DNA of 64,000 nt. Origin: Neoechinorhynchus agilis (Eukaryota > Animalia > Acanthocephala). The notes beneath the pieces were generated by a model. It saw only the letters and a list, made by a program, of their open reading frames with translations, was not told the DNA's origin and ran no database searches. Within the stretch, counting starts at the first letter, position 1. Each line of letters opens with the position of its first letter. Both the position numbers and the translations under genes were made by a program. The stretch covers positions 12,043,480 through 12,107,479 of the forward strand of contig CM121342.1 in NCBI GenBank assembly GCA_051530055.1, given 5' to 3'. Shown here piece by piece: positions 3,764 through 53,664 of this stretch.

Positions 3764-3779
3764 TAATTGTAAAAGTTGT

Positions 3780-26913: not shown

Positions 26914-27186
26914 AACGCTTACAAACTCATAACCTTATGGATCAAGGAATCTGCTCCTTCGAACTCGTTCCCTTAGAAAAACACCTCTCTCTAATCTTTC
27001 ACAAACACTCAAAGCGCCTTCATTCTCTTCCTCTTCTTCAATTTCTACCACAAATTTCTCCTTTTGCTCACACTTACAACACTCGCGTCGCCCCAACATT
27101 TTCCATCCTTCAGTTCCTCACACAAATCTCAACGAGTACGAAGGAGCAGATTCCTTGATCCATAAGGTTATGAGTTTGTAAGCGTT
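26914..27186. mobile_element. 273-bp element with 56-bp terminal inverted repeats around a captured repeat fragment
   Basis: 26914-26969 and 27131-27186 are reverse complements with 1 mismatch. The 161-bp interior matches ~55850-56000 and ~53500-53644. Confidence 0.8.
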
Positions 27187-29973: not shown

Positions 29974-30273
29974 TCAATCATTATCGCCGATGCCAAACCG
30001 TTCAGACACCTGCTTAATCGAACATTGATCAATTGATGCGATTTGACCTAACAGGATTTGAGCCACGTCTTTAATATCGTTGTATTCATGAAGAAGATCG
30101 CGATAACGACGACTTTCATCGCATTCGACATCATTTGCACTCCCGAGTTCAAGTAACTCCTTCTCCAAGTCTTCAATTTCTTTTCGCAAATCAGAAGTTA
30201 AACATTTGTCATCAACTCTCCTCAGAGGAGATTTAAATGCACCCACAGGCGCAGCATTTGCTTGCTTTTTCAT
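29974..30273 (-). CDS. SWI5: DNA repair protein SWI5 homolog
   Basis: LLHEYNDIKDVAQILLGQIA...VSERFGI is the Swi5 domain signature, preceded by a coiled coil. Confidence 0.88.
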   Translation of the reverse strand: MKKQANAAPVGAFKSPLRRVDDKCLTSDLRKEIEDLEKELLELGSANDVECDESRRYRDLLHEYNDIKDVAQILLGQIASIDQCSIKQVSERFGIGDND

Positions 30274-33200
30274 CCGCAAGTGAAAAAGTATCGACAAGAA
30301 AAAGAATTAAAATACTATGGGGAAAACGACAACATCGTAATACATTTAAAAAAATTACTGTAAAAAAACTCATCACCACAAAGTAGATAAAAACAATGGA
30401 AAACAATTTAACGGTAAGGGAAACCTTCAAAAATTAAGATGGTGAATTTCATAGTAACACCGGAAGAACGATTCGCTCCATGAGATCTTTGAATTTGCCA
30501 TGAAATGCGATAATGTTCGCAATTATTGACGAACGATTTTTTGTGAGCATTCTTTAGAATTCTTAGAGGTGAGATGATGAATATCTCAAAAATCTTACTT
30601 TCGCTCCAGTGAACGAATGATGATGTCGAGATTTCTTATCTTATTTTGTAATTGAATTATTGGCGACTGAAATCTCGGACGAATTCTCCCTTTTGTGATA
30701 TTTTATCTTTAATTTTATATGATGAAATGCGATCTTCGCGATGGTCTTCGGATTAATTGACGAACAATTTTCTTGTGAGCATTCTATAGAATTCTTTACA
30801 TGAGATGATGAATATCTCAAAAATCTTACTTTCGCTCCAGTGAACGAATGATGATGTCGAGATTTCTTATCTTATTTTGTAATTGAATTATTGGCGACTG
30901 AAATCTCGGACGAATTCTCCCTTTTGTGATATTTTATCTTTAATTTTATATGATGAAATGCGATCTTCGCGATGGTCTTCGGATTAATTGACGAACAATT
31001 TTCTTGTGAGCATTCTATAGAATTCTTTACATGAGATGATGAATTTCTCAAAAATCTGACTTTCGTTCTACTGAACGAATGATGATATCGAGTTTTCTGA
31101 TCTTAATTTTTAATTGAATTGTTAGCGATTCAAATTTCGGGCGAATTCTCCCTTTTGTGCAATTTTATCCTTTAATTTGCAATGATGAGTTGCGATCTTC
31201 GCGATGGTCTTCGGATTTATTGACGAAAGTTTTGCTTCTGAGCATTCTTTAGAATTCTTTAGATGAGATGATGAATTTCTCAAAAATCTTACTTTCGTTC
31301 TACTGAACGAATGATGATATCGAGATTTCTGATCTTAATTTGTACTTGAATTCTTAGCGATTGAAATCTCGGCGAATTCTCCCTTTTGTGATATTTTATC
31401 CTTTAATTTGCAATGATGAAATGCGATCTTCGCGATGGTATTCGGATTTATTGACGAAAGTTTTGCTTCTGAGCATTCTTTAGAATTCTTTGAGATGAGA
31501 TGATGAATTTCTCAAAAATCTAACTTTCGTTCTACTGAACGAATGATGATATCGAGATTTCTGATCTTCATTTGTACTTGAATTCTTAGCGATTAAAATC
31601 TCGGCGAATTCTCCCTTTTGTGATATTTTATCCTTTAATTTGCAGTGATGAAATGCGATCTTCGCGATGGTCTTCGGATTTATTGACGAAAGTTTTACTT
31701 CTGAGCATTCTTTAGAATTCTTTACATGAGATTATGAATTTCTAAAAATCTAACTTTCATTCTACTGAACGAACGAAGATATCGAGATTTCTGATCTTAA
31801 TTTTTAATAGAATCGTTAGCGATCGAAATTTCGGCGAATTCTCCCTTTTGTGATATTTTATCCTTTAATTTTCTATGATGAAATGCGATCTTCGCGATGG
31901 TCTTCAAATTAATTGACGAACAATTTTCTTGTGAGCATTCTTTAGAATTCTTTGAGATGAGATGATGAATTTCTCAAAAATCTAACTTTCGTTCTACTGA
32001 ACGAATGATGATATGGAGTTTTCTGATCTTAAATTGTACTTGAATTCATAGCGATTGAAATCTCGGGCGAATTCTCTTTTTTTTCTATTTTATCTTTTAA
32101 TTTGCAATGATGAAATGCCATCTTCGCGATGGTCTTCGGATTTATTGACGAAAGTTTTTCTTCTGAGCATTCTTTAGAATTCTTTGAGATGAGATCATGA
32201 ATTTCTCAAAAATCTTACTTTCGTTCTACTGAGCGAATGATGATATCGAGATTTCTGATCTTCATTTGTACTTGAATTCTTGGCGATTGAAATGTCGGGC
32301 GAATTCTCCTTTTTGTGCTTTTTTATCCTTTAATTTCCTATGATGAAAAACGATCTTCGCGATTGTTTTCGGATTTATTGACGAAAGTTTTGCTTCTGAA
32401 CATTCTTTAGAATTCTTGGAGATGAGATGATGAGTTTCTCAAAAATCTAACTTTCGTTCTTGTGAACGAATGATGATATCTAGATTCATGATCTTAATTT
32501 GTTCTTGAATTTTTAACGATTGAAATCTCGGGCGAATTCTCCGTTTTGTGATATTTTATCCTTTAATTTGCAATGATGAAATGCGATCTTCGCGATGGTC
32601 TTCGGATTTATTGACGAAAGTTTTGCTTCTGAGCATTCTTTAGAATTCTTTGAGATGAGATGATGATTTTCTCCAAAATCTAACTTTCGTTCTAGTGAAC
32701 GAATGATGATATCGAGATTTCTTATCTTAAATTGTACTTGAATTCATAGCGATTGAAATGTTGGGCGAATTCTCCTTTTTGTGCTTTTTTATCCTTTAAT
32801 TTGCTATGATGAAATGCCATCTTCGTGAAGGCCTTCGGATTTATTGACGAAAGTTTTTCTTCTGAGCATTCTTTAGAATTCTTTGAGATGAGATCTTGAA
32901 TTTCTCAAAAATCTTACTTTCGTTCTACTGAGCGAATGATGATATCGTGATTTCTGATCTTCATTTGTACTTGAATTTTTAGCGATTGAAATCTCGGGCG
33001 AATTCTCCCTTTTGTGATATTTTATCCTTTAATTTGCTATGATTAAATGCGATCTTCGCGATGGTCTTTTGATTTATTGACCAAAGTTTTGCTTCTGAGC
33101 ATTCTTCGGAGTTCTTTGAAGTGCGATGATGGATTTCTCAAAAATCTAACTTTCGTTCAAGTGAACGAATGATGATATCGAGATTTCTGGGCCTTGTTAT

Positions 33201-36200
33201 AAATTGAATTGTTAACGATTGAAATTTCGGGTGAATTCTCCTTTTTGTGTTATTTTATCCTTTAATTTGCAATGATGGTATTCGATCTTCGCGATGGTCT
33301 TCGGATTTAAGGACGAAAGCTTGCTTCTGAGCATTCTATAGAATTCTTTGAGATGAGCTGTTTAATTTCTAAAAAATCTAACTTCCGTTCTACTGAACGA
33401 ATGATGATATCGAGATTTCTGATTTAAATTTGTACTGGAATTCTTAGCGATTGAAATCTCTGGCGAATTCTTTTTTTGCTATATTATACTTTAATTTGCA
33501 ACGATTAAGTGCGATCTTCGCGATGGTCTTCTGATTTATTGACGAAAGTTTTTCTTCTGAGCATTCTTTAGAGTTGCTTGAGATGAAATGTTGAATTTCT
33601 CAAAAATCTAACTTCCGTTCTACTGATCGAATGATGATATCGAGATTTCTGATCTTAATTTGTACTTGAATTCTTGGCGATTGAAATGTCGGGCGAATTC
33701 TCCTTTTTGTGTTTTTTATCCTTTAATTTGCTATGATGAAATGCGATCTTCGCGATGGTCTTCGGATTTATTGAGGAAAGTTTTCTTCTGAGCATTCTTT
33801 AGAATTCTTTGAGATGAGATGATGAATTTCTCAAAAATCTTACTTTCGTTCTACTGAACGAATGATGATATCGAGATTTCTGATCTTAATTTGTACTTGA
33901 ATTCTTGGCGATTGAAATGTCTTGCAAATTCTCCTTTTTGTGCTTTTTTATCCTTTAATTTGCTATGATGAAATGCGATCTTCGCGATGGTCTTCGGATT
34001 TATTGACGAAAGTTTTTCTTGTGAGCATTCTTTAGAATTCTTTGTGATGATGAATTTCTCAAAAATCGCACTTTCGTTCTACTGAACGAATGATGATATC
34101 TAGATTTCTGATCTTCATTTGTACTTGAATGCTTAGCGATTGAAATCTCGGGCAAATTCTCCATTTTGTGATATTTTATCCTTTAATTTGCTATGATTAA
34201 ACTCGATCTTCGCGATGGTCTTCGGATTTATTGACCAAAATTTTGCTTCTGAGCATTCTTTGGAATTTTTTACATGAGATGATGAATTTCTCAAAAATCT
34301 AAATTCCGTTCTACTGAACGAATGATGATGTCGAGATTTCTTATCTTAATTTGTACTGGAATTCTAAGCGGTTGAAATCTCTGGCGAATTCTCTTTTTTT
34401 GCTATTTTATTCTTTAATTTGCTATGATGAAATGCGATCTTCGCGATGGTCTTCGGATTTATTGACGAAAGTTTTTCTTGAGAGCATTCTTTTGAATTCT
34501 TTGAGATGAGATGATAAATTTCTCAAAAAACTTACTTTCGTTCTACTGAACGAATGATGATATCGAGATTTATGATGGTAATTTGTACTGGAATTCTTAG
34601 CGATTGAAATCTCTAGCGAATTCTCTTTTTTTGCTATTTTATCCTTTAATTTGCTATGATGAAATGCGATCTTCGCGATGGTCTTCGGATTTATTGACGA
34701 AAATTTTGCTTCTGAGCATTTTTTGTAATTCTTTACATGAGATGATGAATTTCTCAAAAATCTTACTTCCGTTCTACTGAACGAATGATGATGTCGAGAT
34801 TTCTTATCTTAATTTGTACTGGAATTCTTAGCGATTGAAATCTCTAGCGAATTCTCTTTTTTTTGCTATTTTATCCTTTAATTTGCTATGATGAAATGCG
34901 ATCTTTGCGATGGTCTTCGGATTTACTGACGAAAGTCTTGCTTCTGAGCATTCTTTAGAATTCTTTAGATGAGATGATGAATTTCTCAAAAATCTAACTT
35001 TCGTTCTACTGAACGGATGATGATATTGAGATTTCTGATCTTAATTTGTACTTGAATTCTTGGCGATTGAAATGTCGTGCGAATTCTTCTTTTTGTGCTT
35101 TTTTATCCTTTTATTTGCTATGATGAAATGCTATCTTCGCGATGGTCTTCGGATTTATTGACGAAAGTTTTTCTTCTCAGCATTCTTTAGAATTCTTTGA
35201 GATGAGATGATGAATTTCTCAAAAATCTAACTTTCGTTCTACTGAACGAACGATGATGTCGAGATTTCTTATCTTAATTTGTTCTGGAATTCTTAGCGAT
35301 TGAAATCTCTTGCGAATTCTCTTTTTTTTCTATTTTATCATTTAATTTGCTATGATGAAATGCGATCTTCGCGATGGTCATCGGATTTATTGACGAAAGT
35401 TTTGCTTCTGAGCATTCCTTAGAATTCTTTAGATGAGATGATGAATTTGTGAAAAATCTAGGTTTCGTTCTACTGAACGAATGATGATATCGAGATTTCT
35501 GATCTTAATTTTTTATAGAGTTGTTAGCGATTGAAATTTCGGGCGACTTCTCCCTTTTTTGCTATTTTATCCTTTAATCTGGTATGATTAAATGCGATCT
35601 TCGCGATGGTCTTCGTATTTCTTGACGAACGATTTTCTTGTGAGCATTCTTTAGAATTCTTTGAGGTGCGATGATGAATTTCTCAAAAATCTAATTTTCG
35701 TTCTAATGAACGAATGATGATATCGAGATTTCTGATGTTCATTTGAACTTGAATTCTTAGCGATTAAAATCTCGGGCGAATTCTCCCTTTTGTGATATTT
35801 TATCCTTTAATTTGCAGTGATGAAATGCGATCTTCGCGATGGTCTTCGGATTTATTGACGAAAGTTTTGCTTCTGAGCATTCTTTAGAATTCTTGGAGAT
35901 GAGATGATGAATTTCTCAAAAATCTAACTTTCGTTCTAGTGAACGAATGATGATATCGAGATTTATGATCTTAATTTGTTCTTGAATTTTTAGCGATTGA
36001 AATCTCGGGCGAATTCTCCGTTTTGTGATATTTTATCCTTTAATTTGCAATGATGAAATGCGATCTTCGCGATGGTCTTCGGATTAATTGACGAACGATT
36101 TTCTTGTGAGAATTCTTTAGATGAGATGATGAATTTCTCAAAAATCAAACTTTCATTCTACAGAACGAATGAAGATATCGAGATTTCTGATCTTAATTTT

Positions 36201-39200
36201 TAATAGAGTTGTTAGCGATTAAAATCTCGGGTTAATTCTCCCTTTTGTGATATTTTATCCTTTAATTTGCAGTGATGAAATGCGATCTTCGCGATGGTCT
36301 TCGGATTTATTTACCAAAGTTTTGCTTCTGAGCATTCTTTGGAATTCTTTACATGACATGATGAATTTCTCAAAAATCTAACTTCCGTTCTACTGAACGA
36401 ATGATGATACCGAGATTTCTCATCTTAATTTGTACTTGAATTCTTGGCGATTGAAATGTCGGGCGAATTCTCTTTTTTGTTCTTTTTTATCCTTTAATTT
36501 CCTAGGATGAAATGCCATCTTCACGATGGTCTTCGGATTTTTGACGAAAGTTTTTCTTATGAGCATTCTTTAGAATTCTTTGAGATGAGATGATGAATTT
36601 CTCAAAAATCTAACTTTCGTTCTACTGAACGAATGATGATATCGAGATTTCTGATCTTAATTTTTACTAGAATTCTTAGCGATTGAAATCTCTAGCGAAT
36701 TCTCTTTTTTTGCTATTTTATCCTTTAATTTGCTATGATGAAATGCGATCTTCGCGATGGTCTTCGGATTTACTGACGAAAGTTTTGCTTCTGAGCATTC
36801 TTTAGAATTCTTTAGATGAGATGATGAATTTCTCAAAAATCTAACTTTCGTTCTACTGAACGAATGATGATATCGAGATTTCTGATCTTAATTTGTACTT
36901 GAATTCTTGGCGATTGAAATGTCGTGCGAATTCTTCTTTTTGTGCTTTTTTATCCTTTAATTTGCTATGATGAAATGCTATCTTCGCGATGGTCTTCGGA
37001 TTTATTGACGAAAGTTTTTCTTCTCAGCATTCTTTAGAATTCTTTGAGATGAGATGATGAATTTCTCAAAAATCTAACTTTCGTTCTACTGAACGAATGA
37101 TGATATCGAGATTTCTTATCTTAATTTGTACTGGAATTCTTAGCGATTGAAATCTCTTGCGAATTCTCTTTTTTTTCTATTTTATCCTTTAATTTGCTAT
37201 GATGAAATGCGATCTTCGCGATGGTCTTCGGATTTATTGACGAAAGTTTTTCTTCTGAGCATTCTTTAGAATTCTTTAGATGAGATGATGAATTTGTGAA
37301 AAATCTAGGTTTCGTTCTACTGAACGAATGATGATATCGAGATTTCTGATCTTAATTTTTTATAGAGTTGTTAGCGATTGAAATTTCGGGCGACTTCTCC
37401 CTTTTTTGCTATTTTATCCTTTAATCTGGTATGATTAAATGCGATCTTCGCGATGGTCTTCGTATTTCTTGACGAACGATTTTCTTGTGAGCATTCTTTA
37501 GAATTCTTTGAGGTGCGATGATGAATTTCTCAAAAATCTAATTTTCGTTCTAATGAACGAATGATGATATCGAGATTTCTGATGTTCATTTGAACTTGAA
37601 TTCTTAGCGATTAGAATCTCGGGCGAATTCTCCCGTTTGTGATATTTTATCCTTTAATTTGCAGTGATGAAATGCGATCTTCGCGATGGTCTTCGGATTT
37701 ATTGACGAAAGTTTTGCTTCTGAGCATTCTTTAGAATTCTTAGGAGATGATGAATTTCACAAAATCTAACTTTCGTTCTAGTGAACGAATGATGATATCG
37801 AGATTTATGATCTTAATTTGTTCTTGAATTTTAACGATTGAAATCTCGGGCGAATTCTCCGTTTTGTGATATTTTATCCTTTAATTTGCAATGATGAAAT
37901 GCGATCTTCGCGATGGTCTTCGGATTAATTGACGAACGATTTTCTTGTGAGAATTCTTTAGATGAGATGATGAATTTCTCAAAAATCAAACTTTCATTCT
38001 ACAGAACGAATGAAGATATCGAGATTTCTGATCTTAATTTTTAATAGAGTTGTTAGCGATTAAAATCTCGGGTTAATTCTCCCTTTTGTGATATTTTATC
38101 CTCTAATTTGCAGTGATGATATGCGATCTTCGCGATGGTCTTCGGATTTATTTACCAAAGTTTTGCTTCTGAGCATTCTTTGGAATTCTTTACATGACAT
38201 GATGAATTTCTCAAAAATCTAACTTCCGTTCTACTGAACGAATGATGATACCGAGATTTCTCATCTTAATTTGTACTTGAATTCTTGGCGATTGAAATGT
38301 CGGGCGAATTCTCTTTTTTGTTCTTTTTTATCCTTTAATTTCCTAGGATGAAATGCCATCTTCACGATGGTCTTCGGATTTTTGACGAAAGTTTTTCTTA
38401 TGAGCATTCTTTAGAATTCTTTAAGATGAGATGATGAATTTCTCAAAAATCTAACTTTCGTTCTACTGAACGAATGATGATATCGAGATTTCTGATCTTA
38501 ATTTTTAATAGAGTTGTTAGCGATTGAAATTTCGGCGACTTCACCTTTTTGTGTTTTTTTAATTTGCTATGATGAAATGCGATCTTCGCGATGGTCTTCG
38601 GATTTATTGACCAAAGTTTTGCTTCTGAGCATTCTTTGGAATTCTTTACATGAGATGATGAATTTCTCAAAAATCTAACTTCCGTTCTACTGAGCGAATG
38701 ATGATATCGAGATTTCTCATCTTAATTTGTACTTGAATTCTTGGCGATTGAAATGTCGGGCGAATTCTCTTTTTTGTTCTTTTTTATCCTTTTATTTCCT
38801 AGGATCAAATGCCACCTTCACGATGGTCTTCGGATTTTTGACGAAAGTTTTCCTTATTAGCATTCTTTAGAATTCTTTGAGATGAGATGATGAATTTCTC
38901 AAAAATCTAACTTTCGTTCTACTGAACGAATGATGATGTCGAAATTTCTTATCTTAATTTCTACTGGAATTCTTAGCGATTTAAATCTCTGGCGAATTCT
39001 CTTTTTTTGCTATTTTATCCTTTAATTTGCTATGATGAAATGCGATCTTCGCGATGGTCTTCGGATTTATTGACGAAGGTTTTGCTTCTGAGCATTCTTT
39101 AGAATTCTTTAGATGAGATGATGAATTTCTCAAAAATCTAACTTTCGTTCTACTGAACGAATGATGATATCGAGATTTCTGATCTTAATTTTTAATAGAG

Positions 39201-40036
39201 TTGTTAGCGATTGAAATTTCGGGCGACTTCTCCCTTTTGTGCTATTTTATCCTTTAATTTGCTATGATGAAATGCGATCTTCGCGATGGTCTTCGGATTT
39301 ATTGACGAAAGTTTTTCTTGTGAGCATTCTTTAGAATTCTTTGAGATGAGATGATTAATTTCTCAAAAATCTAACTTTCGTTCTACTGAACGAATGATGA
39401 TATCGAGATTTCTGATCTTAATTTGTACTTGAATTCTTGGCGATTGAAATGTCGGGCGAATTCTCCTTTTTGTGCTTTTTTATCCTTTAATTTGCTATGA
39501 TGAAATGCGATCTTCGCGATGGTCTTCGGATTTATTGACGAAAGTTTTTCTTGTGAGCATTCTTTAGAATTCTTTGAGATGATGAATTTCTCAAAAATCT
39601 TACTTTCGTTCTACTGAACGAATGATGATATCGAGATTTCTGATCTTAATTTGTACTTGAATTCTTAGCGATTGAAATCTCGGGCAAATTCTCAATTTTG
39701 TGATATTTTATCCTTTAATTTGCTATGATTAAATGCGATCTTCGCGATGGTCTTCGGATTTATTGACCAAAGTTTTGCTTCTGAGCATTCTTTTAAATTC
39801 TTTACATGAGATGATGAATTTCTCAAAAATCTAACTTCCGTTCTACTGAACGAATGATGATGTCGAGATTTCTCATCTTAATTTGTACTGGAATTCTTAG
39901 CGATTGAAATCTCGGGCGAATTCTCTTTTTTTGTTATTTTATCCTTTAATTTGCTATGATGAAATGCGATCTTCGCGATGGTCTTCGGATTTATTGACGA
40001 AAGTTTTTCTTCTGAGCATTCTTTAGAATTCTTTAG

Positions 40037-40111
40037 ATGAGATGATGAATTTCTCAAAAATCTAACTTTCGTTCTACTGAACGAATGATGATATCGAGAT
40101 TTCTGATCTTA
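40037..40111 (+). ncRNA. SNORD59: Representative box C/D snoRNA-like unit (U59/snR54-type, 18S guide), repeated in most array units
   Basis: Box C ATGATGA 40042-48, guide tctaactttcgttct 40061-75, D' CTGA 40077-80, C' ATGATGA 40085-91, D CTGA 40103-06. The guide is complementary to the recalled 18S sequence AGAACGAAAGUUAGA. Confidence 0.7.
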
Positions 40112-40183
40112 ATTTGTACTTGAATTCTTGGCGATTGAAATGTCGGGCGAATTCTCTTTTTTGTGCTTTTTTATCCTTTAATT

Positions 40184-40250
40184 TGCTATGATGAAATGCG
40201 ATCTTCGCGATGGTCTTCGGATTTATTGACGAAAGTTTTGCTTCTGAGCA
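40184..40250 (+). ncRNA. Representative second C/D-like module of the array unit (target uncertain)
   Basis: tgc-t-ATGATGA (40188-94) ... CTGA (40244-47)-gca gives a 3-bp K-turn-compatible terminal stem. 60 nt from C to D. C'/D' boxes are not obvious. Confidence 0.4.
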
Positions 40251-43200
40251 TTCTTTAGAATTCTTGGAGATGAGATGATGAATTTCTCAAAAATCTAACT
40301 TTCGTTCTACTGAACGAATGATGATATCGAGATTTATGATCTTAATTTGTACTTGAATTCTTAGCGATTGAAATCTCGGGCGAATTCTCCTTTTTGTGCT
40401 ATTTTATCCTTTAATTTGCTATGATGAAATGCGATCTTCGCGATGGTCTTCGGATTTATTGACGAAAGTTTTTCTTGTGAGAATTCTTTAGATGAGATGA
40501 TGAATTTCTCAAAAATCTAACTTTCGTTCTACTGAACGAATGATGATATCGAGATTTCTGATCTTAATTTGTACTAGAATTGTTAGCGATTAAAATCTCG
40601 GCGAATTCTCCGTTTTGTGATATTTTATCCTTTAATTTGCAGTGATGAAATGCGATCTTCGCGATGGTCTTCGGATTTATTGACGAAAGTTTTGCTTCTG
40701 AGCATTCTTTAGAATTCTTTAGATGAGATGATGAATTTCTCAAAAATCTAACTTTCGTTCTACTGAACGAATGATGATATCGAGATTTCTGATCTTAATT
40801 TGTACTTGAATTCTTGGCGATTGAAATGTCGGGCGAATTCTCCTTTTTGTGTTTTTTTATCCTTTAATTTGCTATGATGAAATGCGATCTTCGCGATGGT
40901 CTTCGGATTTATTGACGAAAGTTTTGCTTCTGAGCATTCTTTAGAATTCTTTAGATGAGATGATGAATTTCTCAAAAATCTAACTTTCGTTCTACTGAAC
41001 GAATGATGATATCGAGATTTCTGATCTTAATTTGTACTTGAATTCTTAGCGATTGAAATCTCGGGCGAATTCTCTTTTTTGTGCTATTTTATCCTTTAAT
41101 TTGCTATGATGAAATGCGATCTTCGCGATGGTCTTCGGATTTATTGACGAAAGTTTTGCTTCTGAGCATTCTTTAGAATTCTTTGAGATGAGATGATGAA
41201 TTTCTCAAAAATCTAACTTTCGTTCTACTGAACGAATGATGATATCGAGATTTATGATCTTAATTTGTACTTGAATTCTTAGCGATTGAAATCTCGGGCG
41301 AATTCTCTTTTTTGTATTTTATCCTTTAATTTGCAATGATGAAATGCGATCTTCGCGATGGTTCGGATTAATTGACGAACGATTTTCTTGTGAGAATTCT
41401 TTAGATGAGATGATGAATTTCTCAAAAATCAAACTTCATTCTACTGAACGAATGAAGATATCGAGATTTCTGATCTTAATTTTTACTAGAGTTGTTAGCG
41501 ATTAAAATCTCGGCGAATTCTCCCTTTTGTGATAATTTATCCTTTAATTTGCAGTGATGAAATGCGATCTTCGCGATGGTCTTCGGATTTATTGACGAAA
41601 GTTTTGCTTCTGAGCATTCTTTAGAATTCTTGGGATGAGATGATGAATTTCTCAAAAATCTAACTTTCGTTCTAGTGAACGAATGATGATATCGAGATTT
41701 CTGATCTTAATTTGTACTTGAATTCTTGGCGATTGAAATGTCGTGCGAATTCTCCTTTTTGTGCTTTTTTATCCTTTAATTTGCTATGATGAAATGCGAT
41801 CTTCGCGATGGTCTTCGGATTTATTGACGAAAGTTTTTCTTGTGAGCATTCTTTAGAATTCTTTGAGATGAGATGATGAATTTCTCAAAAATCTAACTTT
41901 CGATCTAGTGAACGATTGATAATATCGAGATTTATGATCTTAATTTGTACTTGAATTCTTGGCGATTGAAATGTCGTGCGAATTCTCCTTTTTGTGCTTT
42001 TTTATCCTTTAATTTGCTATGATGAAATGCGATCTTCGCGATGGTCTTCGGATTTATTGACGAAAGTTTTTCTTGTGAGCATTCTTTAGAATTCTTTGAG
42101 ATGAGATGATGAATTTCTCAAAAATCTTACTTTCGTTCTACTGAACGTATGATGATATCGAGATTTATGATGGTAATTTGTACTGGAATTCTTAGCGATT
42201 GAAATCTCTAGCGAATTCTCTTTTTTTTGCTATTTTATCCTTTAATTTGCTATGATGAAATGCGATCTTCGCGATGGTCTTCGGATTTACTGACGAAAGT
42301 TTTGCTTCTGAGCATTCTTTAGAATTCTTTAGATGAGATGATGAATTTCTCAAAAATCTAACTTTCGTTCTACTGAACGAATGATGATATCGAGATTTCT
42401 GATCTTAATTTGTACTTGAATTCTTGGCGATTGAAATGTCGAGCGAATTCTCCTTTTTTGTTTTTTTATCCTTTAATTTGCTATGATGAAATGCGATCTT
42501 CGCGATGGTCTTCGGATTTATTGACGGTGCTTTTTTATCCTTTAATTTGCTATGATGAAATGCGATCTTCGCGATGGTCTTCGGATTTATTGACGAAAGT
42601 TTTTCTTGTGAGCATTCTTTAGAATTCTTTAGATGAGATGATGAATTTCTCAAAAATCTAACTTTCGTTCTACTGAACGAATGATGATATCGAGATTTCT
42701 GATCTTAATTTGTACTAGAATTCTTAGCGATTGAAATTTCGGGCGAATTCTCCCTTTTGTGCTATTTTATCCTTTAATTTGCTATGATGAAATGCGATCT
42801 TCGCGATGGTCTTCGGATTTATTGACGAAAGTTTTGCTTCTGAGCATTCTTTAGAATTCTTTAGATGAGATGATGAATTTCTCAAAAATCTAACTTTCGT
42901 TCTACTGAACGAATGATGATATCGAGATTTATGATCTTAATTTGTACTTGAATTCTTGGCGATTGAAATGTCGTGCGAATTCTTCTTTTTGTGCTTTTTT
43001 ATCCTTTAATTTGCTATGATGAAATGCGATCTTCGCGATGGTCTTCGGATTTATTGACGAAAGTTTTTCTTGTTAGCATTCTTTAGAATTCTTTGAGATG
43101 AGATGATTAATTTCTCAAAAATCTTACTTTCGTTCTACTGAACGAATGATGATATCGAGATTTCTGATCTTAATTTGTACTTGAATTCTTGGCGATTGAA

Positions 43201-46200
43201 ATGTCGGGCGAATTCTCCTTTTTGTGTTTTTTTATCCTTTAATTTGCTATGATGAAATGCGATCTTCGCGATGGTCTTCGGATTTATTGACGAAAGTTTT
43301 TCTTGTGAGCATTCTTTCGAATTCTTTGGGATGAGATGATGAATTTCTCAAAAATCTAACTTTCGATCTAGTGAACGATTGATAATATCGAGATTTATGA
43401 TCTTAATTTGTACTTGAATTCTTAGCGATTGAAATCTCGGGCGAATTCTCTATTTTGTGATATTTTATCCTTTAATTTGCAGTGATGAAATGCGATCTTC
43501 GCGATGGTCTTCGGATTAATTGACGAACGATTTTCTTGTGAGAATTCTTTAGATGAGATGATGAATTTCTCAAAAATCAAACTTTCATTCTACAGAACGA
43601 ATGAAGATATCGAGATTTCTGATCTTAATTTTTAGTAGAGTTGTTAGCGATTAAAATCTCGGCGAATTCTCCCTTTTGTGATAATTTATCCTTTAATTTG
43701 CATGATGAAATGCGATCTTCGCGATGGTATTCGAATTTATTGACGAAAGTTTTGCTTCTGAGCATTCTTTAGAATTCTTTGGGATGAGATGATGAATTTC
43801 TCAAAAATCTAACTTTCTATCTAGTGAACGATTGATAATATCGAGATTTATGATCTTAATTTGTACTTGAATTCTTAGCGATTGAAATCTCGGGCGAATT
43901 CTCTATTTTGTGATATTTTATCCTTTAATTTGCTGTGATTAAATGCGATCTTCGCGATGGTCTTCGGATTTATTGACCAAAGTTTTGCTTCTGAGCATTC
44001 CTTAAAATTCTTTAGATGAAATGATGAATTTCTCAAAAATCTAACTTCCGTTCCACTGAACGAATGATGATGTCGAGATTTCTAATCTTAATTTGTACTG
44101 GAATTCTTAGCGGTTGAAATCTCGGGCGAATTCTCTTTTTTTTCTATTTTATCCTTCAATTTGCTATGATTAAATGCGATCTTCGCGATGGTCTTCGGAT
44201 TTATTGACGAAAGTTTTTCTTGTGAGCATTCTTTAGAATTCTTTGAGATGATGAATTTCTCAAAAATCTTACTTTCGTTCTACTGAACGAATGATTATAT
44301 CGAGATTTCTGATCTTCATTTGTACTTGAATTCTTAGCGATTGAAATCTCGGGCAAATTCTCTATTTTTTGATATTTTATCCTTTAATTTGCAGTGATGA
44401 AATGCGATCTTCGCGATGGTCTTCGGATTTATTGACGAAAGTTTTGCTTCTGAGCATTCTTTAGAATTCTTTAGATGAGATGATGAATTTCTCAAAAATC
44501 TAACTTTCGTTCTACTGAACGAATGATGATATCGAGATTTCTGATCTTAATTTGTACTTGAATTCTTGGCGATTGAAATGTCGGGCGAATTCTCCTTTTT
44601 GTGTTTTTTTATCCTTTAATTTGCTATGATGAAATGCGATCTTCGCGATGGTCTTCGGATTTATTGACGAAAGTTTTGCTTCTGAGCATTCTTTGGAATT
44701 CTTTAGATGAGATGATGAATTTCTCAAAAATCTAACTTTCGTTCTACTGAACGAATGATGATATCGAGATTTCTGATCTTAATTTGTACTTGAATTCTTG
44801 GCGATTGAAATGTCGGGCGAATTCTCCTTTTTGTGTTTTTATATCCTTTAATTTGCTATGATGAAATGCGATCTTCGCGATGGTCTTCGGATTTATTGAC
44901 GAAAGTTTTGCTTCTGAGCATTCTTTAGAATTCTTGGAGATGAGATGATGAATTTCTCAAAAATCTTACTTTCGTTCTACTGAACGTATGATGATATCGA
45001 GATTTATGATGGTAATTTGTACTGGAATTCTTAGCGATTGAAATCTCTAGCGAATTCTCTTTTTTTGCTATTTTATCCTTTAATTTGCTATGATGAAATG
45101 CGATCTTCGCGATGGTCTTCGGATTTATTGACGAAAGTTTTGCTTCTGAGCATTCTTTAGAATTCTTTGAGATGAGATGATGAATTTCTCAAAAATCTTA
45201 CTTTCGTTCTACTGAACGAATGATGATATCGAGATTTATGATCTTAATTTGTACTTGAATTCTTAGCGATTGAAATCTCGGGCGAATTCTCTATTTTGTG
45301 ATATTTTATCCTTTAATTTGCAGTGATGAAATGCGATCTTCGCGATGGTCTTCGGATTAATTGACGAACGATTTTCTTGTGAGAATTCTTTAGATGAGAT
45401 GATGAATTTCTCAAAAATCAAACTTTCATTCTACAGAACGAATGAAGATATCGAGATTTCTGATCTTAATTTTTAGTAGAGTTGTTAGCGATTAAATTCT
45501 CGGGTTAATTCTCCCTTTTGTGATATTTTATCCTTTAATTTGCAGTGATGAAATGCGATCTTCGCGATGGTCTTCGGATTTATTGACGAAAGTTTTGCTT
45601 CTGAGCATTCTTTAGAATTCTTGGAGATGAGATGAGTAATTTCTCAAAAATCTAACTTTCGTTCTAGTGAACGATTGATAATATCGAGATTTCTGATCTT
45701 AATTTGTACTTGAATTCTTGGCGATTGAAATGTCGTGCGAATTCTCCTTTTTGTGCCTTTTTATCCTTTAATATGCTATGATGAAATGCGATCTTCGCGA
45801 TGGTCTTCGGATTTATTGACGAAAGTTTTTCTTGTGAGCATTCTTTAGAATTCTTTGGGATGAGATGATGAATTTCTCAAAAATCTAACTTTCGATCTAG
45901 TGAACGATTGATAATATCGAGATTTATGATCTTAATTTGTACTTGAATTCTTGGCGATTGAAATGTCGTGCGAATTCTCCTTTTTGTGCTTTTTTATCCT
46001 TTAATTTGCTATGATGAAATGCGATCTTCGCGATGGTCTTCGGATTTATTGACGAAAGTTTTTCTTGTGAGCATTCTTTAGAATTCTTTGAGATGAGATG
46101 ATGAATTTCTTAAAAATCTTACTTTCGTTCTACTGAACGTATGATTATATCGAGATTTCTGATCTTCATTTGTACTTGAATTCTTAGCGATTGAAATCTC

Positions 46201-49200
46201 GGGCAAATTCTCTATTTTGTGATATTTTATCCTTTAATTTGCTGTGATTAAATTCGATCTTCGCGATGGTCTTCGGATTTATTGACCAAAGTTTTGCTTC
46301 TGAGCATTCCTTGAAATTCTTTACATGAGATGATGAATTTCTCAAAAATCTAACTTCCGTTCCACTGAACGAATGATGATGTCGAGATTTCTAATCTTAA
46401 TTTGTACTGGAATTCTTAGCGGTTGAAATCTCGGGCGAATTCTCTTTTTTTGCTATTTTATCCTTCAATTTGCTATGATGAAATGCGATCTTCGCGATGG
46501 TCTTCGGATTTATTGACGAAAGTTTTGCTTCTGAGCATTCTTTAGAATTCTTTAGATGATATGATGAATTTCTCAAAAATCTAACTTTCGTTCTACTGAA
46601 CGAATGATGATATCGAGATTTCTGATCTTAATTTTTAATAGAGTTGTTAGCGATTGAAGTTTCGGGCGACTTCTAACTTTTGTGCTATTTTATCCTTTAA
46701 TCTGGTATGATTAAATGCGATCTTCGCGATGGTCTTCGTATTTATTGACGAACGATTTTCTTGTGAGCATTCTTTAGAATTCTTTGAGGTGCGATGATGA
46801 ATTTCTCAAAAATCTAACTTTCGTTCTACTGAACGAATGATGATATCGAGATTTCTGATGTTAATTTGTACTTGAATTCTTAGCGATTGAAATCTCGGGC
46901 TAATTCTCCTTTTTGTGATATTTTATCCTTTAATTTGCAGTGATGAAATGCGATCTTCGCGATGGTCTTCGGATTTATTGACGAAAGTTTTGCTTCTGAG
47001 CATTCTTTAGAATTCTTGGAGATGAGATGAGTAATTTCTCAAAAATCTAACTTTCGTTCTAGTGAACGAATGATGATATCGAGATTTCTGATCTTAATTT
47101 GTACTTGAATTCTTGGCGATTGAAATGTCGGGCGAATTCTTCTTTTTGTGTTTTTTTATCCTTTAATTTGCTATGATGAAATGCGATCTTCGCGATGGTC
47201 TTCGGATTTATTGACGAAAGTTTTTCTTGTGAGCATTCTTTAGAATTCTTTGAGATGAGATGATGAATTTCTCAAAAATCTAACTTTCGTTCTACTGAAC
47301 GAATGATGATATCGAGATTTCTGATCTTAATTTGTACTTGAATTCTTGGCGATTGAAATGTCGGGCGAATTCTCCTTTTTGTGCTTTTTTATCCTTTAAT
47401 TTGCTATGATGAAATGCGATCTTCGCGATGGTCTTCGTATTTATTGACGAACGATTTTCTTGTGAGCATTCTTTAGAATTCTTTGAGGTGCGATGATGAA
47501 TTTCTCAAAAATCTAACTTTCGTTCTACTGAACGAATGATGATATCGAGATTTCTGATGTTAATTTGTACTCGAATTCTTAGCGATTGAAATCTCTAGCG
47601 AATTCTCTTTTTTTGCTATTTTATCCTTTAATTTGCTATGATGAAATGCGATCTTCGCGATGGTCTTCGGATTTACTGACGAAAGTTTTTCTTCTGAGCA
47701 TTCTTTAGAATTCTTTGAGATGAGATGATTAATTTCTCAAAAATCTTACTTTCGTTCTAGTGAACGAATTATGATATCGAGATTTCTGATCCTAATTTTT
47801 AATTGAATAGTTAGCGATTGAAATTTTTCGGGCGAATTCTCCTTTTTTGCTATTTTATCCTTTAATCTGGTATGATTAAATGCGATCTTCGCGATGGTCT
47901 TCGTATTTCTTGACGAACGATTTTCTTGTGAGCATTCTTTAGAATTCTTTGAGGTGAGATGATGAATTTCTCTAAAAATCTAACTTTCGTTCTACGTAAC
48001 GAATGGCGATTTCGATATTTCTGATCCTAATTTGTACTTGAATTGTTAGCGATTGAAATCTCGACCTTATTCTCCGTTTTGTGCTGTGAGATCCTATAAT
48101 TTGCTTTGATGAAATGCGATCTTCGCGATGGTCTTCGGATTTATTGATGAAAGTTTTGCTTGTGAGCATTCCTTAGAATTCTTTGAGATCAGATGATGAT
48201 ATCGAGATTTCTGATCCTAATTTGTACTTGAATTGTTAGCGATTGAAGTCTCGACCTAATTCTCCGTTTTGTGCTGTGAGATCCTATAATTTGCTTTGAT
48301 GAAATGCGATCTTCGCGATGGTCTTCGGATTTATTGAAGATAGTTTTTCTTCTGAGCATACTTTAGAATTCCTTGAGATGAGATGATGAATTTCTCAAAA
48401 ATCTTACTTTCGTTCTAGTGAACGAATGGTAATATCGAGATTTCATATCCTAATCTGCACTTGAATTGTTAGCGATTGAAATCTCGGCGAATTCTCCCTT
48501 TTGTGATAATTTATCCTTTAATTTGCTTTGATGAAATGCGATCTTCGCGATGGTCTTCGGATTTATTGAAGATAGTTTTGCTTCTGAGCATACTTTAGAA
48601 TTCCTTGAGATGAGATGATGAATTTCTCAAAAATCTAACTTTCGATCTAGTGAACGATTGATAATATCGAGATTTCTGATCTTAATTTGTACTTGAATTC
48701 TTGGCGATTGAAATGTCGTGCGAATTCTCCTTTTTGTGCCTTTTTATCCTTTAATATGCTATGATCAAATGCGATCTTCGCGATGGTCTTCGAATTTATT
48801 GACGAGCGATTTTCTTGTTAGCATTCTTTTGAATTCTTTGAGGTGAGAGGATGTATTTCTCGAAAATCTAACTGTCGTTCTAGTGAACGAATGATGATAT
48901 CGAGATTTCGGTTCTTAATTTGTAATTGAATTCTTAGCGATTGAAATCTCGTGCGAATTCTCCCTTTTGTGATATTTTATCCTTTAATTTACTATGATGA
49001 AATGCGATCTTCGCGATGGTCTTCGGATTTATCGACGTAATTTTTTCTTATGTGCATTTTTTAGAATTCTAAAGTTTCAAAAATTGAATGATACGACTTT
49101 TTTTATTATTAAAATTTCTCTCATTTTGCTTATTTTGTTGTCGGCTGGTATCTTTGGTGTGAGATGGTTGTGATAATATTTTTTGCCTTGTCAAATGGAA

Positions 49201-49360: not shown

Positions 49361-50860
49361 TTAGGCGGCTGTTGTCTGTCCTGCTGCTGTACTGCTTCCG
49401 CTTTGACTAGCAAAAGCGATTTCGAGTTCCGACATTTCCTTGATTAGTCTTGTTTGGAGCATCATTTTGGTTAGTGTCATCTCTGAAACGGCTTTGCTGG
49501 TGAACCAAATCGGTGATTCTGGCATAACGGACTTTTCGGGTTCTAAATAGATGCAATGTTCGGAATGCCGTAAAGATACTGGGCACTTGGAGATGTAGAA
49601 TTCGAAAATGCGGCATGCGCAATGCATGGCAAAGGATCGGTCTTCTATTTGTTCAAAGATAAGATCCGGGTCGCGCGTTGGATAATAGCGAATGAACCGC
49701 TGCCTGCTCACTTCCTTATAGTGCTGATTTTCATTATGACTGCTTTCACTTTCATTTAATTTTTGATCCTCGCTATCGATTGGTACGACCCATCGTTTTA
49801 CATGACGGCGGACATTAGCGAAAGTGAGGTCGTAGTGATCCTGAATGTTAAGAATAAGAAAGCATTTGATGTTAATGTAAAACAAAGTATTCAGTAATGT
49901 TCTGGGTGAATGAGCGCCAAGCATATACGATTTCCATAAGATTTCTTCATTAATACGAGAATATACTCGATTGTCTCGAGGATCGATTTGAACAGTGCAA
50001 TGTTGGATTCGATCAAAAACGAATTGTGAAAAAGCGTTGAATTCAGGATCGTACAGGATGTCTTCCTCCCTTCCGATCGATCTCAGAAAATAGTGAACAC
50101 TAACAGATACGAAATAGAGAACTTCTGGGGAGCACAGTGTTCCGTCGGATTTTTTCAGTTGGATAGCGAATCTAAGCAAAGATTTACTTAGCTGTTCAAC
50201 ACTGAACTCAGGGAATGTTTTTGGAATAGACGGATCCTTACGGCGGTAGGTTTGTACAAAACTCTGAAACAGCTGAGCGCCCAGTGTTAAGTTGTGCTCT
50301 TTATCGGTCGAAATGAAAAATTCGTCGACCGAAGGAGGCATTTCTAACTGGTTTGGTAACCGTCGAGTTTCTACTGTACATTGTTCTTCTTTTTCTATTT
50401 CACTAAAGTGCTCACTTTGCTCTTCAGTTGGTTCATTTTTCACCGATCGATCGATTAGTTCTTTAAATCTTTTTTCTCCAACAGGTAGAAAGACCGGAAT
50501 CGGCAATGGAATCGGCAAAGGGATTGGACGCGGTGTAAAGTATCGAAACATGCACATTGGAATGGGGACCGGAATACCAACGGGAAACGGAATAAATCCA
50601 CCAATTCCATTGGACGTCTGAGTTCCCGTTTGACGAATATCAGGTTTATTCCATGAATGATCGATTTGGAGATCAATTGATCAATCACGATTACATGAAA
50701 CATATCGACTCGAATGGCATGCAGACGTGTTCGTCTTCACATTACGACGAACTGCCAATTCAATGTGGCTACTTGAATGTATTGATACCGGCACATTCAT
50801 ATCAGGATTGTTCGCTCTGTCAGCCTCCAGACTTACCTTCTCCTGCTTTATTTCAGCCAT
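49361..50860 (-). CDS. ZMYM/QRICH1/WOC-type DUF3504 domain protein
   Basis: Pro-rich PVGIPVPIPM...PIPLPIPVFLP, then LSKSLLRFAIQLKKSDG...CSPEVLYFV, EEILWKSYMLGAHSPRTLLNTLFYIN, CACRIFEFYISKCP...YLEPEKSVMPESPIWFT. The 5' exon (ATG 50860) and a ~100-nt intron are tentative. Confidence 0.8.
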
Positions 50861-53395: not shown

Positions 53396-53644
53396 AGTTG
53401 ATTTTGGTTGGTTAATTTTGTACTTGTTGGTTTCCGCTCTTTCCCCCGAATCAATTTGCATTTGGAGGATTGAGCAGTGGGGAAGAAAGATCGGAAGTAG
53501 AGATTTGCGCGAGGAACTGAAGGATGCGACGCAAGTGTTGTAAGTGTGAGCAAAAGGAGAAATTTGTGGTAGAAATTGAAGAGGAGGGAGAGAATGAAGG
53601 TGCTTTGAGTGTTTGTGAAAGATTAGAGAGAGGTGTTTTTCTAA
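53396..53644 (-). repeat. Dispersed ~250-bp repeat, inverted relative to 55849-56114
   Basis: Reverse complement of tagaaaaacacctctctctaatc...ccaaaatcaact. Confidence 0.85.
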
Positions 53645-53664
53645 GGCAACAAGTTCGAAGGAGG

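Follow-up and report, generated by a model that had tools for sequence, protein, structure and literature searches.

A tandem array of about 80 dicistronic box C/D snoRNA units carrying three canonical rRNA guides in an animal genome

Guide snoRNAs of animals normally locate in introns. The family of snR54 (yeast), SNORD59 or U59 (vertebrates) and Z159 (plants) is characterized by the D'-side guide UAACUUUCGUUCU-N-CUGA, and yeast and human carry one or two intronic copies of it (IMD4 and ATP5F1B introns). SNORD35 (U35, snR73 in yeast) and SNORD38 (U38, snR61) are two separate snoRNAs in yeast and human. In trypanosomatids, Euglena and plants, on the other hand, several different canonical guide snoRNA genes are closely spaced on the same strand in head-to-tail repeats, and processing of a polycistronic precursor yields the transcripts. 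Such clusters are the normal arrangement in these protists and plants, with lower repeat numbers and homogeneous copies, whereas the array described here belongs to an animal and most of its copies are degenerate. Animal genomes do contain box C/D snoRNAs in tens of tandem copies, namely in the mammalian imprinted arrays SNORD115/116 and SNORD113/114. In these, a unit extends over kilobases, the non-coding host exons are repeated with a single snoRNA in each intron, and the guides are orphans.

Two further systems are close to this locus. Dictyostelium DdR13/CD13 is a double guide encoded in non-intronic clusters and is assigned to Am1370, the equivalent of yeast Am1133 and human Am1858 (PMC8817022); these clusters comprise 2–3 genes, compared with the ~80-fold array here. 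In Schistosoma mansoni, the available passages of one study (PMC8490949) describe a W-element satellite, W2.2, with a monomer of 709–711 bp that traces back to an LTR retrotransposon, namely its protease region, and contains a 'SNORD59' predicted by StructRNAFinder; one W2.2 variant has a point mutation in the D box. These passages of PMC8490949 contain no rRNA target test for the prediction. W2.2 is the only published animal satellite we found for which a SNORD59-like box C/D motif is claimed in the monomer, and it is unrelated in sequence to the unit of this array. We found no animal precedent in the literature for canonical guides in such an array.

The window analyzed here is a 64-kb stretch of the Neoechinorhynchus agilis genome. 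A sequence-only reading of it had proposed an ~80-copy array of ~231-bp units at 30500–49071. The array is real, and TRF and nhmmer resolve it into 77 full and 5 partial units of 231–233 bp, all head-to-tail on the + strand, of which the first and the last are truncated and degenerate. TRF reports a period of 232 with 76.3 copies and 85% matches over 30516–48199, followed by a period of 233 up to 49069. A single unit as nhmmer query matches 82 times in succession on the + strand, between 30476 and 49070, and with the consensus as query the hits already begin at 30460. Searching the whole window with nhmmer revealed no further copy outside the array or on the - strand. The genes flanking the array are of animal type and are compatible with an invertebrate. 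The units differ from each other by ~10% on average. The nearest relative of a unit is most often 8 units distant, with a median identity of 97%, and the array thus grew by multi-unit duplication. In structure it is satellite DNA: a short monomer that encodes no protein is repeated head-to-tail over a long stretch, and the repeats show unit divergence and higher-order duplication.

The monomer had been described as carrying one snoRNA. That description missed a second one, referred to here as snoRNA B: the 232-bp unit is dicistronic, a cassette of two box C/D snoRNAs with three canonical guides. Table 1 lists its elements for the reference unit at 40797, one of seven that retain both snoRNAs and all three guides intact; the other six start at 36659, 40566, 42175, 44317, 44549 and 46399. 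Both snoRNAs are about 65–75 nt long, with box C near the 5' end, box D near the 3' end, boxes C, D', C' and D in canonical order, and a short terminal stem of 3–4 bp. Folded as RNA, two units do not stand out (z = -1.34).

Table 1. Positions of the array, its upstream interval and the elements of the reference unit, in window coordinates.
Feature	Position	Strand	Basis or state across units
Whole tandem array	30460–49070	+	TRF; nhmmer with a single unit and with the consensus; boundaries read in the sequence
Candidate shared promoter interval, ~200 bp	30271–30476	.	Between the start of a divergent Swi5-family gene and the first unit
Reference unit, both snoRNAs and all three guides intact	40797–41028	+	
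snoRNA B, box C/D double guide	40869–40936	+	Terminal stem TGC/GCA; weak Rfam hits
B box C, ATGATGA	40874–40880	+	Exact in 47/77 units; GTGATGA in 12 more
B D' guide TTCGCGATGGTCTT and D' box CGGA	40890–40907	+	Pairs with LSU TAGACCGTCGTGAG; SNORD35 consensus alignment
B box C', TGACGA	40913–40918	+	One mismatch to UGAUGA; exact in 65/77 units
B D guide AAGTTTTGCTT and D box CTGA	40919–40933	+	Pairs with LSU AAGCAGAACT
snoRNA A, box C/D	40956–41029	+	Rfam snR54 hits; terminal stem TGAG/CTTA, 1-nt offset
A box C, ATGATGA	40960–40966	+	Exact in 64/77 units
A D' guide TCTAACTTTCGTTCTA and D' box CTGA	40979–40998	+	Pairs with SSU AGAACGAAAGTTAGA
A box C', ATGATGA	41003–41009	+	Exact in 59/77 units
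A D-proximal segment TATCGAGATTT and D box CTGA	41010–41024	+	

Within the unit, snoRNA A follows 20–25 nt downstream of snoRNA B, the spacers measure ~20 nt and ~71 nt, and conserved splice sites are absent. This is the layout of a polycistronic cluster, in which different snoRNA genes lie on one strand, tens of nucleotides apart, with no exons between them. Since large tandem box C/D arrays with repeated host genes exist in mammals, each unit might instead contribute a small non-coding exon, with each snoRNA in its own intron, as in SNORD115/116. We regard this arrangement as highly improbable. The only AG...GT pair that might delimit a 31-nt exon (consensus positions 20–21 and 53–54) is not kept: 31% of units deviate at A20 and 25% at G53. 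Moreover, in a unit of only 232 bp with such short spacers the two snoRNAs would occupy one ~200-nt intron, and their guides have canonical rRNA targets, in contrast to the orphan guides of the mammalian arrays.

The C-D'-C'-D architecture of the 18S-guide snoRNA, here snoRNA A, had been recognized before and is real, and the example given for it at 40042–40106 is exact in position (ATGATGA at 40042–40048, terminal CTGA at 40103–40106). That most units contain this motif is true only loosely: the exact 65-nt string is present in 17 units, and 26, 47 and 69 units match it with at most 1, 3 and 5 mismatches, respectively. The D' guide of snoRNA A pairs with the SSU over 15 bp, and the D'+5 rule on a yeast-type rDNA contig leads to 18S A974 (A1031 of human 18S), which agrees with the snR54/U59 site proposed earlier. 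Because the curated Rfam family snR54 has this guide string, UAACUUUCGUUCUACUGA, as its consensus, the guide is not a chance match. snoRNA A therefore has the D'-side guide and the predicted target in common with snR54/SNORD59, and differs from them in its ~80 tandem copies beside a second snoRNA and in its Rfam score, which stays below gathering (39.8 vs 50 bits). Across the 77 full units, the D' guide is exact in 32 and the D' box in 53. An exact box C together with an exact box D occurs in 37 units, and 18 have all four boxes and the 13-nt guide exact.

We notice that two other segments of snoRNA A are well kept. The D-proximal segment is exact in 60/77 units, with 2.5% mismatch; on the rDNA contigs it has no convincing rRNA target, the best pairing being 9–10 bp with 3–5 G-U. 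The segment after box C, ATTTCTCAAAAA, shows 1.5% mismatch and is likewise without an assigned rRNA target. Together with odd internal complementarities, these segments could indicate a non-guide role: the array might sequester core snoRNP proteins, give rise to small regulatory RNAs, or act at the DNA level as a chromatin- or protein-binding satellite; in the DNA-level version, the conserved boxes would be the segments that lack an rRNA assignment. Such a role seems very unlikely to us. The fold of two units is ordinary, and the best-kept single element of the unit is a canonical rRNA guide.

This element belongs to snoRNA B, which is present in every unit (consensus positions 72–141). Its D' guide pairs with the LSU over 13 bp including 3 G-U, and the +5 rule on the yeast-type rDNA contig places the target at yeast 25S C2959, the snR73/U35 site. 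The mismatch rate of this U35-type guide is 1.3%; it is exact in 67/77 units, and its pairing is retained in 71/77. In the G-variant units, the D guide pairs with the LSU over 10 bp, of which 1 is G-U, and by the same rule on that contig it reaches yeast 25S A1133, the snR61/U38 site. In about half of the units the G at -4 of this guide is replaced by T, and the pairing next to the target is thereby lost. Boxes C and D of snoRNA B are both exact in 38/77 units. The human equivalents of C2959 and A1133 are 28S C4506 and A1858 (PMC8817022). snoRNA B thus unites two guides whose predicted sites are those of two separate snoRNAs in yeast and human. Compared with SNORD35, its D' box is CGGA and its Rfam score is weak. 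DdR13/CD13 has the same D guide for the U38 site (AGUUUUGCUU-CUGA), but its other guide points to G2952, the snR67/U31 site.

Target positions were read on a yeast-type rDNA contig, on which the SSU and LSU were located by Rfam. Three of the four guide positions per unit place the +5 nucleotide on known methyl sites (18S A974, 25S A1133 and 25S C2959), with at least 10 nt of rRNA complementarity ending 1 nt upstream of D or D' on this contig. The guide strings are identical to the consensus guides of Rfam snR54, DdR13 and SNORD35, and the target sequences are conserved across 50–120 eukaryotic rDNA contigs. By predicted pairing, the unit addresses the sites of all three families, snR54/SNORD59, SNORD35/snR73 and SNORD38/snR61.

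The Rfam scores stay below threshold. On snoRNA A, snR54 (RF00473) of clan CL00065 scored 39.8 and 39.0 bits, with E 5e-4 for a search of 501 nt. It is the best family, as the sequence-only reading had anticipated, but no Rfam hit on the unit attains its gathering score. snoRNA B gives weak hits to snoR114 (24.4 bits), DdR13 (23 bits) and SNORD35 (15.8 bits vs gathering 36), and at E<=10 no SNORD38 or snR61 hit in Rfam covers it. A single-copy intronic U59-like snoRNA on an unrelated contig of another organism also scores below its threshold (32.8 vs 39 bits), so the missed snR54 cut-off weakens formal membership only mildly.

The copies have decayed to different degrees. The guide of snoRNA A looks competent in 25 of the 77 units, the U38-type guide of snoRNA B in 28 and its U35-type guide in 33. 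At least one competent guide is left in 49/77 units; the units without any number 28/77 under relaxed criteria and 35/77 under strict criteria, and under strict criteria neither snoRNA is fully intact in 40/77. Neither the D and D' boxes nor two of the three guides are conserved better than the spacer: mismatch rates are 10–12% for D boxes and 9% for the U38-type guide, compared with 8–12% for the spacer. Singleton mutations per site are also similar (0.49–0.69 in the snoRNAs vs 0.53 in the spacer). High-frequency, hence old, variants differ, with 1.9–2.9 copies per site in the snoRNA bodies against 5.4 in the spacers. Parsimony counts 3.0 events per site in the spacer and 1.5 in the non-core snoRNA body (base-stratified permutation p<0.0002), a set that was fixed before the D' guide, D' box and C' box of snoRNA B were recognized and therefore contains them; the counts refer to this original partition. 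Among the units of the array there are no compensatory changes, and every variant in a terminal stem or spacer hairpin breaks a pair. Spacer-like variation of boxes and guide had been named earlier as a mark of a dead satellite. It holds for the D and D' boxes, two guides and the singletons, but not for the U35-type guide. Since only about one third of the copies still look usable, the array falls between two states, a multi-copy gene cluster that works and a satellite in decay. Its mean unit divergence of ~10% is far above what is usual for working 5S or snRNA gene arrays. A polycistronic cluster and a snoRNA-derived satellite, the pair of options put forward in the sequence-only reading, are still the right ones, and our data point to a mixture of both.

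Our analysis establishes how both snoRNAs are built, which three sites their guides address, how many copies there are, that the array grew by multi-unit duplication, and how far it has decayed. For its origin, we favor, at a probability of roughly 0.55, a native two-snoRNA unit that was amplified about 80-fold, underwent birth-and-death evolution and has its competent copies expressed as a long precursor. The founder would be the organism's own B-A snoRNA locus, and unequal crossing-over may have produced the array. Now in birth-and-death evolution, the array would be redundant enough that no single copy is under selection; with per-copy selection lifted, variants that kill a box could drift to frequencies of 20–30%, leaving roughly one third of the copies competent for each guide. 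Pol II would transcribe the competent copies from the + strand into a long precursor, and endo- and exonucleases would then free them by trimming up to the assembled snoRNP, the mode known from the polycistronic clusters of plants, yeast and trypanosomatids. Units with broken C/D boxes would fail in assembly and be degraded.

Alternatively, the array may be a silent satellite derived from a captured B-A dicistron, with inert or unstable RNA and with functional guides elsewhere, for example in introns. This is a possibility to be taken seriously, though we judge it less probable than expression of the competent copies. The neutral-looking evolution of single copies fits it, singletons being uniform over the unit, and so do the spacer-like variation of the D and D' boxes and two guides, the 40 units without a fully intact snoRNA, the mean divergence and the lack of compensatory changes. 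The single intronic U59-type guide on the unrelated contig represents the usual animal arrangement and would also agree with silence. Against it, the snoRNA bodies contain significantly fewer old variants than the spacers, the U35-type guide is intact in 71 units, and 17 identical 65-nt cores of snoRNA A persist despite 10% unit divergence. Three different canonical guides per unit further argue for a native, working founder locus, and the window holds no other copy.

If the competent copies are expressed, the start of their precursor may fall in the ~200-bp interval upstream of the array. A divergent gene with its ATG at 30273 on the - strand (Pfam Swi5, 63.8 bits) begins there, and judging from this arrangement we consider the interval a candidate shared promoter region. 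Its + strand contains an ATG at 30396, followed by the 5' splice-site-like ACG/GTAAGG at 30411–30419. A + strand host transcript could start beside the Swi5 promoter, with its ATG at 30396 and its 5' splice site at 30413/30414, and enclose the whole array in its first intron; the snoRNAs would be freed from this intron, whether excised or still unspliced. Such a model varies the favored explanation solely in how the precursor is made. The consensus-like donor 46 nt ahead of the first unit, the ATG upstream of it and the generally intronic location of animal guide snoRNAs are in its favor. We nevertheless think it unlikely: chance alone would yield a GGTAAG hexamer roughly once per 4 kb, neither an exon nor an acceptor site was identified in the window past 49070, and we know of no precedent for ~160 snoRNA genes in a single 18.6-kb intron. 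The interval next to the Swi5-family gene also contains CCGGAAG, at 30460–30466.

Each unit of the array carries two box C/D snoRNAs on the same strand, so that the unit is a dicistronic cassette bearing three canonical guides. The sequence-only reading had described a single snoRNA per unit, here snoRNA A, whose D' guide is the 18S guide. It overlooked snoRNA B, whose D' and D guides we refer to as the U35-type and U38-type guides. What was observed is thus real, and there is more to it than first described. The tandem array itself is borne out: Tandem Repeats Finder (TRF) gives a period of 232 bp with 76.3 copies at 30516-48199, followed by a period of 233 bp up to 49069. A one-unit profile search finds 82 consecutive plus-strand matches at 30476-49070, and with the consensus as query the first match starts from 30460. 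The array contains 77 full-length and 5 partial units, and the profile search of the 64-kb window found no further copy outside the array or on the minus strand. The example given earlier for snoRNA A, 40042-40106, is exact in its coordinates. The accompanying claim that most units contain this motif stands only when mismatches are allowed: the 65-nt string is exact in only 17 units, and occurs in 47 with up to 3 mismatches and in 69 with up to 5.

Features of the window and of one comparison contig; snoRNA positions are those of the reference unit (40797-41028), in which both snoRNAs and all three guides are intact
Feature	Position	Strand	Details
RT ORFs	4232-4930, 7685-8962		retroelement remnants
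EDRF1 exons	16683-20086	-	
Swi5-family gene (left neighbour)	ATG 30273	-	Pfam 63.8 bits; ~200 bp from first unit
snoRNA B	40869-40936	+	5' to 3': box C ATGATGA; 14-nt D' guide TTCGCGATGGTCTT; D' box CGGA; 5-nt linker; C' box TGACGA; 11-nt D guide AAGTTTTGCTT; box D CTGA; 3-bp terminal stem
snoRNA A	40956-41029	+	~20 nt downstream of B; 5' to 3': box C ATGATGA; D' guide TCTAACTTTCGTTCTA; D' box CTGA; 4-nt linker; C' box ATGATGA; 11-nt D-side segment TATCGAGATTT; box D CTGA; 4-bp terminal stem
Spacer after A			~71 nt, T-rich, up to next B
DUF3504/QRICH1-domain ORF (right neighbour)	49361-50557	-	3' end facing array
RT fragment	57581-58123	-	
LTR-type element, aspartic protease and RT	59312-60611		retroelement region 58536-61785
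U59-type snoRNA, plant-metagenome contig L001	595-673 (of L001)		single copy; Rfam Z159/U59 32.8 bits, gathering threshold 39

At gathering thresholds, Rfam gives no match in the whole window. With permissive thresholds, snR54 is the best family for A, as had been expected, although its 39.8 bits (E 5e-4, 501-nt search) stay below the gathering threshold of 50. The matches of B are weak, namely snoR114 (24.4 bits against 45), DdR13 (23 against 65) and SNORD35 (15.8 against 36). In the Rfam alignments, the guide UAACUUUCGUUCUACUGA of A is also that of the snR54 consensus, and B has AGUUUUGCUU-CUGA in common with DdR13 and CGAUGGUCUUC-GA in common with SNORD35. Because all three fall below the score thresholds, the guides of the unit are not filed as curated Rfam members. 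The independent single-copy U59-like gene of L001 likewise lies below its own threshold, which points to cut-offs that are simply strict where lineages are distant.

For the target test, the 18S segment was sought in public assemblies labelled bacterial; it matched more than 120 stretches, of which 80 were fetched as loci. Contig L007, to which the box D/D' +5 rule was applied, is a yeast-type rDNA unit in which Rfam locates the SSU (2050-3849) and the LSU (from ~4601). The D' guide of A is predicted to direct methylation of 18S A974, in agreement with the earlier assignment; this is the established snR54/U59 site, which is also the stated function of Rfam snR54. The D guide of B points to 25S A1133, the snR61/U38 site, and its D' guide to 25S C2959, the snR73/U35 site. 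Both are conserved methylated sites, corresponding to human Am1858 (Dictyostelium CD9/13) and human Cm4506, respectively (PMC8817022). The three target strings are conserved among the rDNA contigs, including a AGAACGAAAGTTAGAGG variant with perfect 15-bp pairing to the guide of A. Three predicted guides falling on three known sites cannot be chance, and by function the unit would resemble snR54/U59 combined with a guide in which U35 and U38 are fused. For the D-side segment TATCGAGATTT of A, the rDNA contigs offer no credible target, the best pairings being 9-10 bp with 3-5 G-U.

The eukaryotic 18S matches came from entries filed as bacterial or archaeal genomes or as MAGs, among them Streptomyces, Endozoicomonas and Poribacteria. 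L007, the only Rfam-checked contig among L003-L082, is a full eukaryotic rDNA unit and a contaminant in a 'bacterial' assembly. Recurring sizes among these contigs (7682 bp, ~9.2 kb) suggest a few common contaminant sources.

We notice several complementarities within the unit. B carries ACGAAAGTT across its C' box and D guide (e.g. 40915-40923), a string identical to the 18S target whose complement, over 9-10 nt, is found in the guide of A (e.g. 40982-40990). A could therefore pair with B, in which case the +5 rule would lead to the A marked in TGA*CGA, the C' box of B, whether by chance or not. The 3' half of the 18S guide, TTCGTTC, is complementary to GAACGAA spanning the D' box and the D'-C' linker (e.g. 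40987-41005), a 7-bp hairpin in A that would mask part of the guide. The D-side CGAGATTTC of A (e.g. 41013-41021) is complementary over 9 bp to the spacer string GAAATCTCG (41055-41063), ~35 nt downstream. This pairing joins consensus positions 218-226 to 27-35 of the next unit; variants disrupt it, and none is compensated. Each 232-bp unit also contains three GAATTC (EcoRI-site) palindromes (consensus 12-17, 39-44 and 148-153), of which the first two can form a 6-bp spacer stem.

The copies are in very different states. Mismatch to the unit consensus is 8-12% in the spacers. The D boxes of B and A stand at 11.7% and 10.4%, the U38-type guide at 9.3% and the D' box of A at 8.1%; the 18S guide has 5.0%, box C of A 3.5% and the U35-type guide 1.3%, the last being exact in 67 of 77 units. 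The sequence-only reading had proposed that boxes and guide no better kept than the spacers would argue for a dead satellite. The D boxes, the D' box of A and the U38-type guide lie within the spacer range, which bears that argument out in part. Disabling variants are common: CTGA has become GTGA in the D box of B in 24 units and in the D' box of A in 17, and ATGA in the D box of A in 14. At position -4 of B's D guide a G/T switch occurs, the T abolishing the pair that adjoins the target nucleotide.

Copies were scored as competent when boxes C and D were exact, the D' box concerned was kept and the duplex reached at least 9-10 bp. On this score, 25 of 77 copies of the 18S guide are competent, 28 of the U38-type guide and 33 of the U35-type guide, and one or more competent guides survive in 49 units. 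Stricter criteria leave all three guides in 7 units and none in 35; the sequence-only reading had put the share of intact units too high. In all three D-type boxes the most recurrently altered base is the C of CTGA (6-12 parsimony events per site), which changes to G in the D box of B and the D' box of A and to A in the D box of A. Recombination spreading old variants, a mutational quirk and selection for silencing are all candidate causes.

Singleton variants, which represent recent independent mutations, are equally frequent in the snoRNAs (0.49-0.69 per site) and the spacers (0.53). Conserved RNA structure in the spacers and terminal stems was considered and rejected, since the fold z is -1.34 and every variant in the terminal stems or spacer hairpins breaks a pair, with none compensated. 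Uniform singletons and the lack of stem compensation indicate that individual copies evolve neutrally, and the variant pattern fits a highly redundant gene array in which no single copy matters. Older, high-frequency variants reach 5.4 copies per site in the spacers versus 1.9-2.9 in the snoRNAs. Parsimony events number 3.0 per site in the spacers versus 1.5 in the initially 'non-core' snoRNA body (p<0.0002, base-stratified permutation), a set that includes the best-kept functional element and, as these constraint tests ignore recombination among units, a comparison that is descriptive only. This set holds the D' guide, D' box and C' box of B because it was defined before the SNORD35 alignment revealed the interior of B; the per-element mismatches are the corrected description and replace the core/non-core partition. 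The older variants fit some degree of filtering across the array, or repeated amplification from good copies, which does not prove present-day function.

Units diverge by ~10% on average, and the nearest relative of a unit has a median identity of 97% and lies most often 8 units off, so that the array grew in part by duplication of ~1.85-kb blocks. The array has satellite-type features, with ~80 tandem copies and block duplication, together with heavy but incomplete decay. The decay and the neutral singletons are what a silent snoRNA-derived satellite would display, with the working genes located elsewhere; the scarcity of older variants in the snoRNAs and the low mismatch of the U35-type guide point the other way, and we consider such a satellite the less likely reading. 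The best explanation as a whole, to which we give a probability of about 0.55, is an amplified native dicistronic cassette of which an intact third works and the remainder decays. The organism's own locus for these guides would have been the founder, which unequal crossing-over may have expanded, and redundancy would then have relaxed selection on each copy. By analogy with polycistronic clusters of plants, yeast and trypanosomatids, the intact third may be co-transcribed from the plus strand and trimmed to snoRNP-protected ends, and broken units would be degraded. We put forward more tentatively, and with less than even confidence, that the array is a working and perhaps the only source of three universally conserved guides, a 5S-rDNA-like polycistronic animal array whose dosage is kept by array-level selection while most copies decay.

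One unit (48029-48215) lacks exactly the A stretch between the C and C' boxes and reads ...GATCAGATGATGATATCGAGATTTCTGA..., the 18S guide and D' box being gone. This loss resembles a recombination deletion between two ATGATGA repeats 43 nt apart. At 42407-42705 (TRF row 42462-42595), a very recent event local to the array has perfectly duplicated, internally, 69 bp that take in the end of the spacer and the 5' half of B (1.9 copies, 100% identity).

The remaining weight is shared by three variants: a host transcript with the array in an intron, a host with repeated exons, and a role other than guiding. As the Swi5 gene starts at the left and the DUF3504/QRICH1 ORF turns its 3' end to the array at the right, the array does not lie within an intron of either neighbour. 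A model with one exon per unit was rejected, since its sole possible AG/GT sites are not conserved and the unit leaves no room for an exon-intron structure. The ~200-bp interval 30271-30476 could hold a bidirectional promoter. On its plus strand it contains an ATG at 30396, a splice-donor-like ACG|GTAAGG at 30411-30419 and CCGGAAG at 30460-30466; the stretch from ATG to donor (30396-30419) may be a first exon with its donor site, as a lead only. Pol III transcription is unlikely owing to T4-T5 runs inside B and in spacer 1.

In animals, snoRNAs that guide methylation at conserved rRNA sites nearly always occur as single or low-copy intronic genes. A degenerate U59-type pattern retrieved one single-copy intronic gene from metagenome contigs, that of L001, whose preceding exon (...GDYYRYLAEVATGD) we take to be 14-3-3-like; this ordinary animal-style intronic copy contrasts with the array. 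To our knowledge, large tandem snoRNA arrays in animals are confined to orphan, imprinted mammalian families. In organisation the array comes closest to polycistronic clusters repeated in tandem in protists and plants, and to mammalian SNORD115/116, the latter differing in unit structure and in their orphan guides. In the literature searched, canonical guides in an animal are nowhere described as forming a tandem array. The nearest item there is the Schistosoma mansoni W2.2, a retrotransposon-derived satellite with a predicted 'SNORD59', which we judge a weak precedent; the available text of that article reports no rRNA target test (PMC8490949). If working, an ~80-copy array with three canonical guides would be a different animal way to organise and dose such genes, closer to trypanosomes, Euglena or plants. 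If silent, it documents a housekeeping non-coding gene seeding a satellite. The array also offers a natural mutant series, with C-to-G and C-to-A changes in D boxes and the G/T switch beside the target nucleotide.

An array-specific 28-mer had no match in public genome contigs, and the contig with the closest EDRF1 relative (bioreactor metagenome) holds neither the array nor a U59-type guide. In a 5.8-billion-protein database, homologues of the EDRF1 exons reach at most 42% identity (Rotaria 32%, Saccoglossus 32%, metagenome proteins 42%) and none was found for the Dus exon, so the source animal seems poorly represented in public protein sets. The DUF3504 ORF has no exact protein match, and no database entry is related to a 425-aa RT at E<=1e-20. 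The window, which comes from an animal, further contains an exon for a cytochrome b5 domain and another that is EF-hand light-chain-like, besides several retroelements.

The array flanks share repeat fragments of 77-96% identity, one of them inverted (24980-25409 and 26948-27130 versus 53526-54109 and 55826-56008). They were rejected as part of the array: they lie 3-7 kb from its edges, look like transposon debris and are unrelated to it. A 12-bp tandem repeat, CAACCTGCCCAC, with 31 copies and 73% matches occupies 1658-2028 within overlapping ORFs (1474-2289), and 70 bp are duplicated in tandem (2 copies, 97% identity) at 62590-62730, near the right end of the window.
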